Positions 2,636-55,543 are shown, numbered from the stretch's first letter. The stretch: DNA of 64,000 bases from Bacillus subtilis subsp. subtilis str. 168 (GCF_000009045.1 NC_000964.3:1178001-1242000); one strand, 5' to 3'. Program-made: numbers and translations. The notes: generated from the sequence alone by a model not told the origin.

Positions 2636-2808
2636 AATAAAAAAAGTCCTCTTAAGAAGAAGACTTTGTCAGTGATTTTGTCTCTTCTTATCTTCCAAGC
2701 TGTTCGAGCTTGCTGGATTTAGCACCTTGGTCATGGCTGATCGCCATTACACCGGTTGCTGAAGCTTCGTCGGGCCAGTCCCTCTGCTTCTCTTGATAAG
2801 AACGGATA
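2636..2808 (-). promoter_or_regulatory. SAM-I (S-box) riboswitch with intrinsic terminator, yitJ leader
   Basis: Minus strand TTCTTATCAAGAGAAGCAGAGGGACTGGCCCGACGAAGCTTCAGCAACC...GGTGCTAAATCC...GATAAGAA; P1 halves at 2795-2802 and 2685-2692; terminator AAAGTCTTC..GAGGACTTTTTT at about 2636-2667. Confidence 0.97.
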
Positions 2809-2908
2809 TGAAATTTTCGTGTCAGGAAGTGCCAAAAGATATCTGGCGTTTTTCCCTTTCTCCAAATTTACCGAAAATAAAGACAATAATCAATAGGAAT
2901 CAGAAAAT

Positions 2909-3400
2909 TTATCTGAAATTTATAAATTGAACGTCAATTGGCAGATCTGCTCCCCGTACAGCTGAGATAATCTGCTGCAGGTCATCTTTGTTTTTTCCGG
3001 TGACACGCACTTGATCATCCTGCACCTGAGACTTTACTTTCAGTCCGGAGTTTTTGATGATCGTATTGATTTTTTTTGCGTTGTCCTTGTCAATGCCTTG
3101 AACAAGCTTTGCACGCTGGCGCACCGTTCCGCCTGACGCGTTTTCAACCTTGCCGTAATCAATGTTTTTTGTCGGTACGTTTCGTTTAATCAATTTGCTG
3201 ACCAGCACATCTTTCAGCTGGCTTAATTTGAATTCGTCATCGGAAACGAGGACCAGCTCCTCTTTATCTAAAGAAATGTCGCTTTTGCTGCCTTTAAAGT
3301 CATATCGGGTACTGATTTCCTTCAGTGCGATTTGGATTGCGTTTTGCACTTCAGGCAATTCCACCTTGGATACAATATCAAATGAACTTTCTTTTGCCAT
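2909..3400 (-). CDS. yitK: YajQ-family nucleotide-binding protein
   Basis: 163 aa; [29 protein letters not shown] YajQ signatures. Confidence 0.92.
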
Positions 3401-6656: not shown

Positions 6657-7004
6657 ATGAAAACGAATCAAGTTAATGACCGCTGGATTGTTCAATTTCG
6701 AAAAGGGATTTTCGAGCTGGCCATCCTATCCCTTCTGCGTTCTAAACCGATGTACGGTTATGAGCTGACGTCATCCTTAAAAACCACCTCGGCGCTGGCT
6801 ATTTCAGAGGGAGCGATTTATCCGATTTTGAAACGTATGACCGAGAAGGGATGGATCGAATTTTTTTGGGAAGATTCACTGGACGGCCCGAAAAGAAAGT
6901 ATTACAAAATGACGCAAAAAGGAGAAGAAATGTTAAAAGAACGGCTGGAGAAATACCTGGAAACCCATCAAGCCTTACTGTCTTTATCGGGGGATTTGCT
7001 ATGA
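6657..7004 (+). CDS. yizB: PadR-family transcriptional regulator
   Basis: 115 aa; [39 protein letters not shown]; ATGA overlap with yitQ; no obvious SD. Confidence 0.9.
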
Positions 7005-7588
7005 ATGGACAGCTTATCATTGACCGATACATGGAGGAACTAAATGCAGAGCTGGCGAATATGCCTGATGTAGAGAGAGAAAACGCTATCGACGAATTAA
7101 AGGGGCATATCACCGCTTTCGTTCAAGACAGAATCAAAGCCGGCCTTAGTGAAGAGGAACTGCAGGAAGCTGTTGAATCTGAATTTTCTCATCCGAAGGA
7201 GCTTGCCGAATTGATGATGGGTGATGGGGGAGAGACGAAAAGGAGGAGGTCTTTATTGGGCAAAAGCTGGATTTCGGTCCTTCTCATTGTCACGATTATC
7301 GCCCTGCCGCTGCTGCCGTCCGACTTCAGACATCTGCCGCTGGCTGTTTATTTAATGGTGCTCGCCGGATATGTATGGAAGCGGAAAAAATTGGTGATGT
7401 TTGCAGGTGTCAGAAAAAACAAAATGCGCTCTCAAAAGGAGATTGTCAAGATTTCGCGAGTCGGTGCGGTTTATCTGCTGTTTTTAGCAGTGGTGCTCCT
7501 TTTGAGCCCGTTCCTCAATGCGCTTGTCGTCCTGCTGCTGATTGCAGTAAGCTGCGCCGCTTTTTTTCTTTTTCTTAACATCAAGTAA
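7001..7588 (+). CDS. yitQ: Membrane immunity protein: N-terminal HAAS-like helical domain plus about 4 TM (195 aa)
   Basis: Start at ATG 7001 overlapping the yizB stop; [12 protein letters not shown]...AIDELKGHI...GLSEEE...[10 protein letters not shown] followed by hydrophobic segments. Confidence 0.85.
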
Positions 7589-10551: not shown

Positions 10552-10629
10552 ATTGCTTCCCTTCTTTCCGTTATCGCTCGTTATCATGAGAGTTAAGCCA
10601 ACTATATCATATTAATTTGCCAAAATCGT

Positions 10630-10688: not shown

Positions 10689-11531
10689 ATGGTACTAGAT
10701 CAAACAAAAAAATTACTCATCGTCATCATCGGCGCTTTACTCAATGCTGCCGGGCTGAACTTATTTTTGATACCTGCAGATGTATATGCCAGCGGATTTA
10801 CAGGTGTTGCCCAGCTTTTATCAAGCGTCGTTGATCAATATGCCCCCTTTTACATATCGACGGGAACGCTCTTGTTCCTCTTAAACATTCCGGTCGGTAT
10901 TTTAGGATGGCTGAAGGTCGGCAAATCGTTTACAGTGTACAGCATTTTAAGTGTCGCACTCACTACTCTGTTTATGGGGATCCTGCCGGAAACAAGCCTG
11001 TCACATGACATTTTGCTGAACGCGGTGTTCGGCGGCGTCATTTCCGCAGTCGGTATCGGCTTAACATTAAAATACGGAGCTTCGACAGGCGGGCTTGATA
11101 TCGTCGCCATGGTACTTGCAAAGTGGAAGGATAAACCCGTCGGCACGTATTTCTTCATTCTGAACGGGATTATCATCTTGACGGCAGGATTATTGCAAGG
11201 TTGGGAGAAAGCATTATATACCCTGGTTACACTATATGTGACAACGAGGGTGATCGACGCCATTCACACTCGCCACATGAAGCTTACGGCAATGATTGTG
11301 ACGAAAAAAGCGGACGAAATCAAGGAAGCCATTTACGGAAAAATGGTGCGCGGCATCACAACTGTTCCGGCAAAAGGAGCATTTACGAACGAACAGAAAG
11401 AAATGATGATTATCGTCATCACGAGGTATGAACTGTACGATTTAGAAAAGATCGTCAAAGAAGTTGATCCAAAAGCATTTACGAACATCGTTCAAACGAC
11501 AGGGATTTTTGGTTTCTTTAGAAAAGACTGA
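10689..11531 (+). CDS. yitT: YitT-family membrane protein (DUF161 + DUF2179), 280 aa
   Basis: Start ATG 10689 after GCGGAGG; GFTGVAQ, STGGLDI; C-terminal DPKAF domain. Confidence 0.92.
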   Translation: MVLDQTKKLLIVIIGALLNAAGLNLFLIPADVYASGFTGVAQLLSSVVDQYAPFYISTGTLLFLLNIPVGILGWLKVGKSFTVYSILSVALTTLFMGILPETSLSHDILLNAVFGGVISAVGIGLTLKYGASTGGLDIVAMVLAKWKDKPVGTYFFILNGIIILTAGLLQGWEKALYTLVTLYVTTRVIDAIHTRHMKLTAMIVTKKADEIKEAIYGKMVRGITTVPAKGAFTNEQKEMMIIVITRYELYDLEKIVKEVDPKAFTNIVQTTGIFGFFRKD

Positions 11532-11549
11532 CGAAAGCAGGTGGAAGTC

Positions 11550-12005
11550 GTGAAACGGCTGCTTGTGATGCTCCTCCCCGTGCTGCTTTTGATAGGCTGC
11601 GGGAAAGATGAGCAGACAGAACCCGATAAGGAGGTATCAGGCGGAATGGAGAATCAAGAGGTTGTTTTATCTATTGACGCAATTCAGGAGCCTGAACAAA
11701 TCAAGTTTAACATGTCGCTGAAGAACCAAAGCGAACGTGCTATTGAGTTTCAATTCAGCACAGGGCAAAAATTTGAACTTGTCGTGTATGATTCTGAGCA
11801 CAAAGAAAGATACCGTTATTCGAAAGAAAAAATGTTTACGCAGGCTTTTCAAAACCTGACGCTTGAATCTGGAGAAACATATGATTTCTCTGATGTGTGG
11901 AAGGAAGTCCCTGAGCCCGGAACCTATGAGGTAAAGGTGACATTTAAGGGCAGGGCGGAAAATCTCAAGCAGGTTCAGGCTGTTCAGCAGTTTGAAGTCA
12001 AATAA
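11550..12005 (+). CDS. ipi: BsuPI proteinase inhibitor; long form with lipoprotein signal (GTG 11550, 151 aa) and short form (ATG 11646, 119 aa)
   Basis: [25 protein letters not shown] BsuPI motifs; both starts have an SD; lipobox LIGC at codons 14-17. Confidence 0.85.
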
Positions 12006-12006
12006 G

Positions 12007-12038
12007 AGGCTATGGCGAGTCGCCATAGCCTTTTTTTA
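12007..12038. terminator. Bidirectional terminator ipi / yizC
   Basis: AGGCTATGGCG-AGT-CGCCATAGCCTTTTTTT. Confidence 0.8.
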
Positions 12039-40112: not shown

Positions 40113-41385
<1,273 letters not shown>

Positions 41386-55428: not shown

Positions 55429-55543
55429 GTGAAATTGATCACAAACAAACATTACCCCTTTGTTTGACCGTGAAAAATTTCTCCCATCCCCTTTGTTGTC
55501 GTTAAGACATATGAAACCGCGCTTATCCCGGCGCGGTTTCTTT
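55429..55543 (+). ncRNA. roxS: RoxS (RsaE-family) small regulatory RNA
   Basis: Promoter TTGTCA-N18-TATCAT; Rex-like box ATGTGAAATTGATCACAA at the start; C-rich motifs at 55455-58, 55481-85, 55488-91; terminator GAAACCGCGC...GCGCGGTTTCTTT. Confidence 0.92.

Follow-up and report, generated by a model that had tools for sequence, protein, structure and literature searches.

The ipi locus

The window analysed here is a stretch of 64,000 nucleotides from Bacillus subtilis 168, and all positions are counted from its first letter. In this window the ipi gene follows directly on yitT and offers two in-frame starts, each preceded by a Shine-Dalgarno (SD) sequence: an upstream GTG, which opens a frame with a predicted lipoprotein signal peptide, and an internal ATG, from which the classical inhibitor Ipi is read (Table 1). 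Both starts, their SD sequences, Cys17 and the linker behind it had been placed here by an earlier reading made from the sequence alone (the sequence-only reading), and all coordinates of this anatomy were reproduced base for base.

The identity of the product is clear from structure and profile alike: residues 33-151 are identical to chain A of PDB entry 3ISY, 'Intracellular proteinase inhibitor' (E = 1.5e-74), and residues 40-136 match positions 3-100 of the 101 in the BsuPI profile (Pfam PF12690; E = 2.4e-32, 111 bits against a cutoff of 22.9). Ipi thus matches the BsuPI (MEROPS I42-like) family over the whole domain. Its sole cysteine is Cys17. A start still further upstream, GTG 11541 (MEVVKRLL...), was considered and rejected: it lies inside the SD sequence, and in four of five licheniformis-clade species a stop codon stands just before the conserved start. 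An Rfam scan at ipi matched no RNA family.

The upstream neighbour encodes a protein with YitT_membrane and DUF2179 domains (Pfam E = 3.5e-60 and 1.2e-18); its ATG at 10689 is preceded by GGAGG at 8 nt, and its orthologs measure 273-281 aa. On weak evidence from a consensus scan, the site at 10581..10610 is a candidate promoter for a joint yitT-ipi transcript. The predicted hairpin at 12004..12034 would end this unit.

Table 1. Features of the yitT-ipi locus with their positions in the window
Feature	Position	Strand	Basis or remark
Promoter-like site TTATCA-18-TATCAT	10581..10610	+	Consensus scan, 9/12 matches; 5' of yitT
yitT, 280 aa from ATG 10689	10689..11531	+	Pfam; stop codon 11529-11531
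Long-form SD AAAGCAGGTGG	11534..11544	+	Core AGGTGG 11539-11544, 5 nt 5' of GTG
Long-form start GTG	11550..11552	+	Opens reading frame of predicted 151-aa pre-prolipoprotein
Predicted type II signal peptide, residues 1-16	11550..11597	+	K2 R3, hydrophobic core, lipobox L-I-G
Cys17 codon TGC	11598..11600	+	Predicted Lgt diacylglycerol site; predicted new N-terminus after LspA cleavage
Polar acidic tether, 15 residues	11601..11645	+	Doubles as 5' part of the putative internal ribosome-binding region
Internal SD AAGGAGGT	11628..11635	+	Codons K27-E28-V29; 10 nt to ATG 11646
Internal start ATG (Met33)	11646..11648	+	Start of classical 119-aa Ipi (MENQEV); 32 codons past GTG 11550
Short-form CDS, BsuPI Ig-like inhibitor domain, 119 aa + stop	11646..12005	+	Stop 12003-12005; domain common to both isoforms
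Predicted intrinsic terminator hairpin, 14-bp stem + T run	12004..12034	+	Terminator scan; overlaps ipi stop; usable from both strands

Comparative material

Together with the B. subtilis window, 28 related loci make up a comparison set of 29. Sixteen loci come from species of the subtilis and licheniformis clades and were obtained by a contig scan with narrow peptide patterns; further loci were fetched protein by protein (B. gobiensis and two relatives, B. shivajii, the velezensis group, B. safensis and Evansella). The deepest are two Metabacillus loci, Bacillus sp. SJS, B. carboniphilus and one metagenomic relative (L025). For codon-level comparison 24 sequences were aligned and placed on a tree, which gave 96 columns with a conserved degenerate amino acid; synonymous variation within the subtilis clade was counted over 12 species.

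Lipoprotein signal peptides were recognised by a PS51257-type rule (a positively charged n-region, an uncharged hydrophobic core and [LVI][ASTVI][GAS]-C with the cysteine at 15-35) after PROSITE and additionally by the Gram-positive pattern G+LPP. A profile search of 1.84 billion representative proteins yielded 2,931 members of the BsuPI family at E <= 0.001; lipoboxes were counted in the 67 proteins of at most 200 aa among the best 150 of these 2,931. In the locus of Bacillus stercoris D7XPN1 (about 2900-3133) the ipi ortholog carries a frameshift near codon 135, and the open reading frame extends to 210 aa (KVTFKAERKISS...); either the assembly is wrong here or the C-terminus is genuinely disrupted.

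The upstream start and the signal peptide

The SD sequence of GTG 11550 forms a duplex of -13.4 kcal/mol with the 3' end of 16S rRNA, and a purine-rich SD (-8.5 to -13.4 kcal/mol) precedes the upstream start in all 24 orthologs that were scored. The start itself is GTG in B. subtilis and ATG outside the subtilis clade; B. atrophaeus has ATG, as do the licheniformis, gobiensis, velezensis and safensis lineages. A stop codon immediately before it fixes its position in four of the five species of the licheniformis clade.

That the signal peptide should remain in frame in relatives was a point on which the sequence-only reading depended, and it is borne out: the frame is open and carries the lipobox cysteine in 28 of 28 other loci, so that this residue is invariant in the complete set (29/29) and in all alignments. 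All indels are multiples of three. The N-terminus of B. subtilis Ipi agrees with both the PS51257-type rule and G+LPP, with the cysteine at position 17 (L-I-G-C17); across 24 loci the former rule is matched by every sequence and the latter by 21. Many synonymous changes have accumulated in the signal peptide, where pN/pS is 0.30 (0.15 in the domain). Judged by this comparison, signal peptide and lipobox are under purifying selection.

The wider family gives the same picture. Among the 67 small proteins, 57 have a full signal peptide with lipobox and another three resemble 5'-truncated versions of one (57-60/67). From the family profile, the lipoprotein is the normal state of BsuPI proteins and the upstream frame of ipi is no relic. 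Many members of more than 200 aa (P0030, P0183 and P0044 among others) fuse a lipoprotein BsuPI domain to other domains or repeats; partners include Gmad2 (PF10648), and up to 12 BsuPI repeats occur in proteins of 1,200-3,300 aa. Such fusions fit a family whose general role lies outside the cytoplasm. Proteins of 116-130 aa with a BsuPI domain and no signal peptide were also seen, in Metabacillus and relatives (P0060, P0077, P0102, P0126 and P0195; e.g. MSGNLEKKGFQLSV...), in lineages that also carry a lipoprotein copy. These may represent paralogs dedicated to the cytosol, or their genes may have been called from an internal start.

The internal start

The sequence-only reading had described the internal SD as perfect. 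It is indeed strong, but its spacing is somewhat long, and the adjective therefore goes too far: GGAGG lies 11 nt from ATG 11646, against 6-10 nt for the likely gene starts with an exact GGAGG in the window. The duplex of the internal site with the anti-SD has a dG of -12.5 to -13.4 kcal/mol, and only 1.1% of the 28-mers in the window reach -12 or lower. With the frame open in all 28 other loci, this makes the arrangement more than a coincidence. The gene thus has two in-frame starts, each with an SD at a workable spacing (the second at the long edge), and the internal SD and start are conserved beyond what the protein sequence needs.

This last point follows from the codon comparison. GGAGG, including both of its third-position G's, is unchanged in 24 loci, and AAG GAG GTA is fixed, third positions included, in the 22 loci that keep K/E-E-V. 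Residues K27, E28 and V29 account for three of only five columns (out of 96) without any third-position change; as a control, all 21 other conserved K/E/Q columns change between one and five times. Such invariance of the third positions in AAG GAG GTA cannot stem from selection on the protein. Codon 33 behaves similarly: it is ATG in 14, GTG in nine and TTG in one of the 24 loci, and its five changes on the tree all stay within the set of start codons. Valine occurs here only as GTG and leucine only as TTG. In the nine species with valine, 19 of the 21 four-fold columns use 2-4 codons; the only two with a single codon are V29 (GTA) and V33 (GTG).

Within the subtilis clade the constraint is wider. 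Codons 18-33 form the longest run without a synonymous change in the 12 species, in which 50% of codons vary synonymously overall; even against B. atrophaeus, where pS of the domain is 0.6, this run shows none. Codons 24-31 (11619-11642) are invariant in nucleotide sequence. The idea that the whole linker is frozen at the nucleotide level in this clade was narrowed: codons 19-23 change non-synonymously and only 24-31 are invariant. In the licheniformis and gobiensis clades the wider block is absent, and only the SD and the start are fixed.

More distant loci retain the site in altered form. B. shivajii and Evansella have kept GGAGG and GTG with one codon fewer between them. In Metabacillus and Bacillus sp. 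SJS the SD is replaced by GAGGTG (GAA/AAA GAG GTG; dG -12 to -14 kcal/mol), with TTG, GTG or ATG 9 nt past it. The metagenomic relative L025 spells K-E-V as AAA GAA GTC, with a dG of -3.1 kcal/mol that equals background, and has CAA at the position of the start codon; by alignment, SD and internal start codon are lost together in this sequence. Because L025 keeps the residues without the SD, conservation of the K-E-V motif must be partly a matter of the protein. In B. carboniphilus the internal site is ambiguous: GTG32 follows a weak SD, and a strong one, GGAGGTG, stands 12 nt ahead of ATG37. Taken over the codon alignments, the internal SD and start codon are under selection at the nucleotide level across Bacillus, Metabacillus and Evansella.

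No RNA structure that might switch between the starts was found: the fold of 11520-11700 does not stand out from that of shuffled sequence (z = -0.48). A CCUCC in codons 8-10 was considered as a pairing partner of the internal SD and rejected, as it is not conserved. With so unremarkable a fold, no mechanism that sets the ratio of the two starts was found.

Linkage with yitT

In 28 of 29 loci yitT lies directly upstream of ipi, down to about 30% identity of Ipi; the exception is B. carboniphilus. In the Bacillus loci only 13-18 nt separate the end of yitT from the long start. An upstream region of its own, 116-158 nt long, precedes the long start of ipi in B. shivajii and Evansella; promoter and terminator scans of these longer intergenic regions gave no informative signal. 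Between yitT and ATG 11646 of the B. subtilis window, a consensus scan revealed no promoter-like or terminator-like site. Given this lack of a separating element and the short gap, a single yitT-ipi transcript that carries both starts is the simplest model, and from gene order the two genes probably share an operon. The conserved pairing suggests that the membrane protein YitT and the lipoprotein form of Ipi are functionally linked, which would be the first functional lead for the uncharacterised YitT/DUF2179 family.

The sequence-only reading had also raised the proximity of nprB as possibly relevant. This finds no backing in the relatives: nprB-type genes are absent beside ipi in B. gobiensis, the B. 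velezensis group, B. safensis and Metabacillus. We also count against such a link that metalloproteases are reported not to be inhibited by Ipi (PMC3901451).

One gene, probably two products

We consider it probable that ipi yields two isoforms from one mRNA by alternative initiation, namely a surface lipoprotein and a cytosolic inhibitor. Ribosomes would initiate at two in-frame sites, probably on a bicistronic yitT-ipi mRNA. Initiation at GTG 11550, aided by the AGGTGG core of its SD, would give the pre-prolipoprotein of 151 aa, expected to be exported by Sec, to receive diacylglycerol on Cys17 from Lgt and to be cleaved by LspA. The mature long form of 135 aa would then be anchored to the membrane's outer face through an acidic tether of 15 residues, and there it could meet exported proteases of the subtilisin type. 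Initiation at ATG 11646, from AAGGAGGT at a spacing of 10-11 nt, would give the 119-aa form, which has no signal peptide and should stay in the cytosol, where it may bind the intracellular subtilisin IspA. Both forms would contain the complete BsuPI domain. Attenuation could come both from the long spacing at ATG 11646 and from the use of GTG as the upstream start codon.

A broader proposal goes a step further and is put forward more tentatively, as something about which we are slightly more doubtful than convinced: Ipi would be mainly a surface lipoprotein, of which the preserved internal site diverts a fixed fraction to the cytosol across the Bacillaceae, so that the inhibitor guards two compartments against proteases of the subtilisin type and has an envelope function associated with YitT. 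If true, it would hold exported enzymes in check where membrane and wall meet and, within the cell, IspA or secretory proteases that fold prematurely.

Alternative explanations

It might be argued that only the lipoprotein matters. The 119-aa species would then be a proteolytic fragment, cut after Met33 and released on lysis of whole cells, and the SD-like sequence would cause an elongation pause during targeting of the signal peptide or merely encode K-E-V. Being a lipoprotein is, as seen above, the norm in this family. Moreover, N-terminal methionine excision leaves Met-Glu intact, as this pair is no substrate of methionine aminopeptidase, and methionine suits the P1 site of subtilisins, for which Met33 would make a good P1 residue. 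According to the account in PMC3901451, the inhibitor purified in 1986 from lysozyme lysates began at Glu34 and not at Met33. We counted this N-terminus for the two-start model; since Met-Glu retains its methionine, it fits a cut of the long form after Met33 equally well, and would otherwise require extra trimming of the short form, so that the classical protein evidence does not discriminate. The persistence of K-E-V in L025 without the SD bases and the longish SD spacing speak for the fragment as well. Both also count against the two-start model (the 11 nt between GGAGG and ATG exceed the spacing at likely gene starts in the window), as do the ambiguous site of B. carboniphilus and the unremarkable RNA fold. 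Yet a pause or a peptide motif needs no start-competent codon 8-11 nt downstream, and one is present in 24 of 24 loci; L025, which lacks the start codon, lacks the SD bases as well; and the third positions of AAG GAG GTA are held constant beyond the reach of protein-level selection. On balance we regard a lipoprotein with a mere degradation product as unlikely.

Two products might also arise through transcription, if a promoter within the 3' end of yitT or the region coding for signal peptide and linker gave a short mRNA for the 119-aa form only, and read-through from the yitT promoter supplied the long one. The block of constraint in the subtilis clade (codons 24-31 invariant, 18-33 without synonymous change) is in fact wider than an SD requires. 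Nonetheless, a consensus scan of 11400-11646 found no sigma-A-like promoter, a promoter in this stretch would lie so near the SD that hardly any leader remained, the wider block is missing in the licheniformis and gobiensis clades, and in B. shivajii and Evansella ipi has an upstream region of its own; we therefore hold this arrangement to be quite improbable. Hardly credible is the remaining account, that only the cytosolic 119-aa protein is made and the upstream frame is an untranslated open leader or a decaying lipoprotein relic. It agrees with the classical description and with the 119-aa models that persist in databases, and the internal site does have the stronger canonical SD and an ATG. 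A relic, however, is expected to gain stops or frameshifts and to lose Cys17, and not one of the 29 loci shows this, even at a divergence that reaches about 30% identity; the pN/pS of the signal peptide, the SD before the upstream start in every scored locus and the ATG found there in most lineages point the same way. Initiation at both sites of one mRNA thus remains the reading that we prefer.

Relation to earlier work

The idea of two Ipi products is not new. Rigden et al. 2013 (F1000Research 2:154; PMC3901451), who solved the 3ISY structure, printed the same 32-residue in-frame extension, which some strain annotations include, and proposed alternative initiation: Met1 would give a secreted or cell-surface form and Met33 the intracellular one. 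They also noted that many Ipi homologues carry signal peptides. Inhibition of subtilisin-type serine proteases by Ipi is described there as reported, with its specificity questioned. In several respects their account differs from ours. Using SignalP, they predicted type I cleavage at Thr23-Glu, and the word lipoprotein is absent from the paper; the upstream codon is called ATG, whereas the window has GTG; and the paper neither analyses SD sequences nor tests either start by comparing codons across relatives. In RefSeq, 151-aa models named 'BsuPI-related putative proteinase inhibitor' now stand beside older 119-aa models across Bacillus.

Consequently, the claim of the sequence-only reading that one gene yields an anchored protein of 151 aa and a cytosolic one of 119 aa gains strong comparative support for both starts, but has a published precedent. 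The core interpretation has been proposed for ipi itself (PMC3901451), and the mechanism is of a known class. Three points are added here to the published account: the reading as a type II (lipoprotein) signal, the SD details and the codon-level evidence for selection on both starts. Literature searches on Ipi, BSU11130 or yitT brought up no usable data on transcripts, the lipoproteome or ribosome profiling; searches for the long form of Ipi, for lipoproteome or labelling data that name Ipi, and for later experiments on its isoforms, lipidation or transcripts yielded nothing either.

The closest parallels come from E. coli, where a 5'-proximal in-frame internal start drops the signal sequence in speA, bamA, ivy and yghG (Meydan et al., bioRxiv 10.1101/520783). 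As in ipi, the primary start gives an exported protein and the second an isoform expected to be cytoplasmic, and in both cases reduced synonymous variation serves as supporting evidence (bioRxiv 10.1101/520783); ivy, like ipi, even encodes a hydrolase inhibitor. The E. coli starts were detected by initiation profiling (Ribo-RET), whereas the internal start of ipi is predicted here from sequence comparison. In ipi, unlike the E. coli set, what is exported is a predicted lipoprotein, the host is Gram-positive, and the historically described product is the short form rather than the long one.

Other in-frame dual-start genes are cheA, a classical example, and lysC of B. subtilis. The classical list further includes infB, clpB and mrcB (bioRxiv 10.1101/520783). 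All five resemble ipi in that an internal SD and start give a nested, N-terminally shorter protein from the same mRNA. In most classical cases the isoforms share one compartment and differ by a domain, whereas those of ipi would differ only by the targeting peptide and tether. Small inhibitors that protect the producer from its own or foreign proteases are known in the cytosol (staphostatins) and outside the cell (Streptomyces subtilisin inhibitor and ecotin). Their folds are unrelated to that of Ipi and each acts in one compartment; we know of none among them that covers two compartments from one gene.

Implications

Ipi is currently seen as a cytosolic regulator of IspA, and this view shapes how control of IspA is discussed. 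Should the bulk of Ipi be a lipoprotein tethered at the surface, the exported subtilisins AprE, Bpr, Epr, Vpr and WprA would become its likely partners, which would bear on protein quality control between membrane and wall and on protease-deficient production strains. The comparative result also makes the hypothesis of 2013 sharply testable, since it points to three synonymous codons and one start codon at which mutation should abolish just one isoform. If confirmed, ipi would provide a conserved Gram-positive lipoprotein example of signal-stripping internal starts, a class documented mainly in E. coli.

Other observations in the window

At 7242-7263 (+), within the open reading frame 6851-7588, lies AAGGAGGAGG, followed 6-9 nt on by an in-frame TTG, 164 codons into a frame of 245 aa. 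The C-terminal half encoded by this frame resembles a membrane protein. The site could be a further internal SD and start, or the result of chance. For the alpha/beta-hydrolase gene (Peptidase_S9/Abhydrolase) the listing of open reading frames starts at TTG 13327 (287 aa). The segment 13410-13425 (+) contains AAGGAGG 8 nt before GTG 13423, from which 255 aa are read; as this is the length of the orthologs in other species, GTG 13423 is likely the true start. Matches at Rfam gathering scores were obtained for a T-box leader at 41164-41378 (-) with 134 bits, the small RNA RsaE/RoxS at 55429-55543 (+) with 123 bits and a SAM riboswitch at 2685-2802 (-) with 98 bits.
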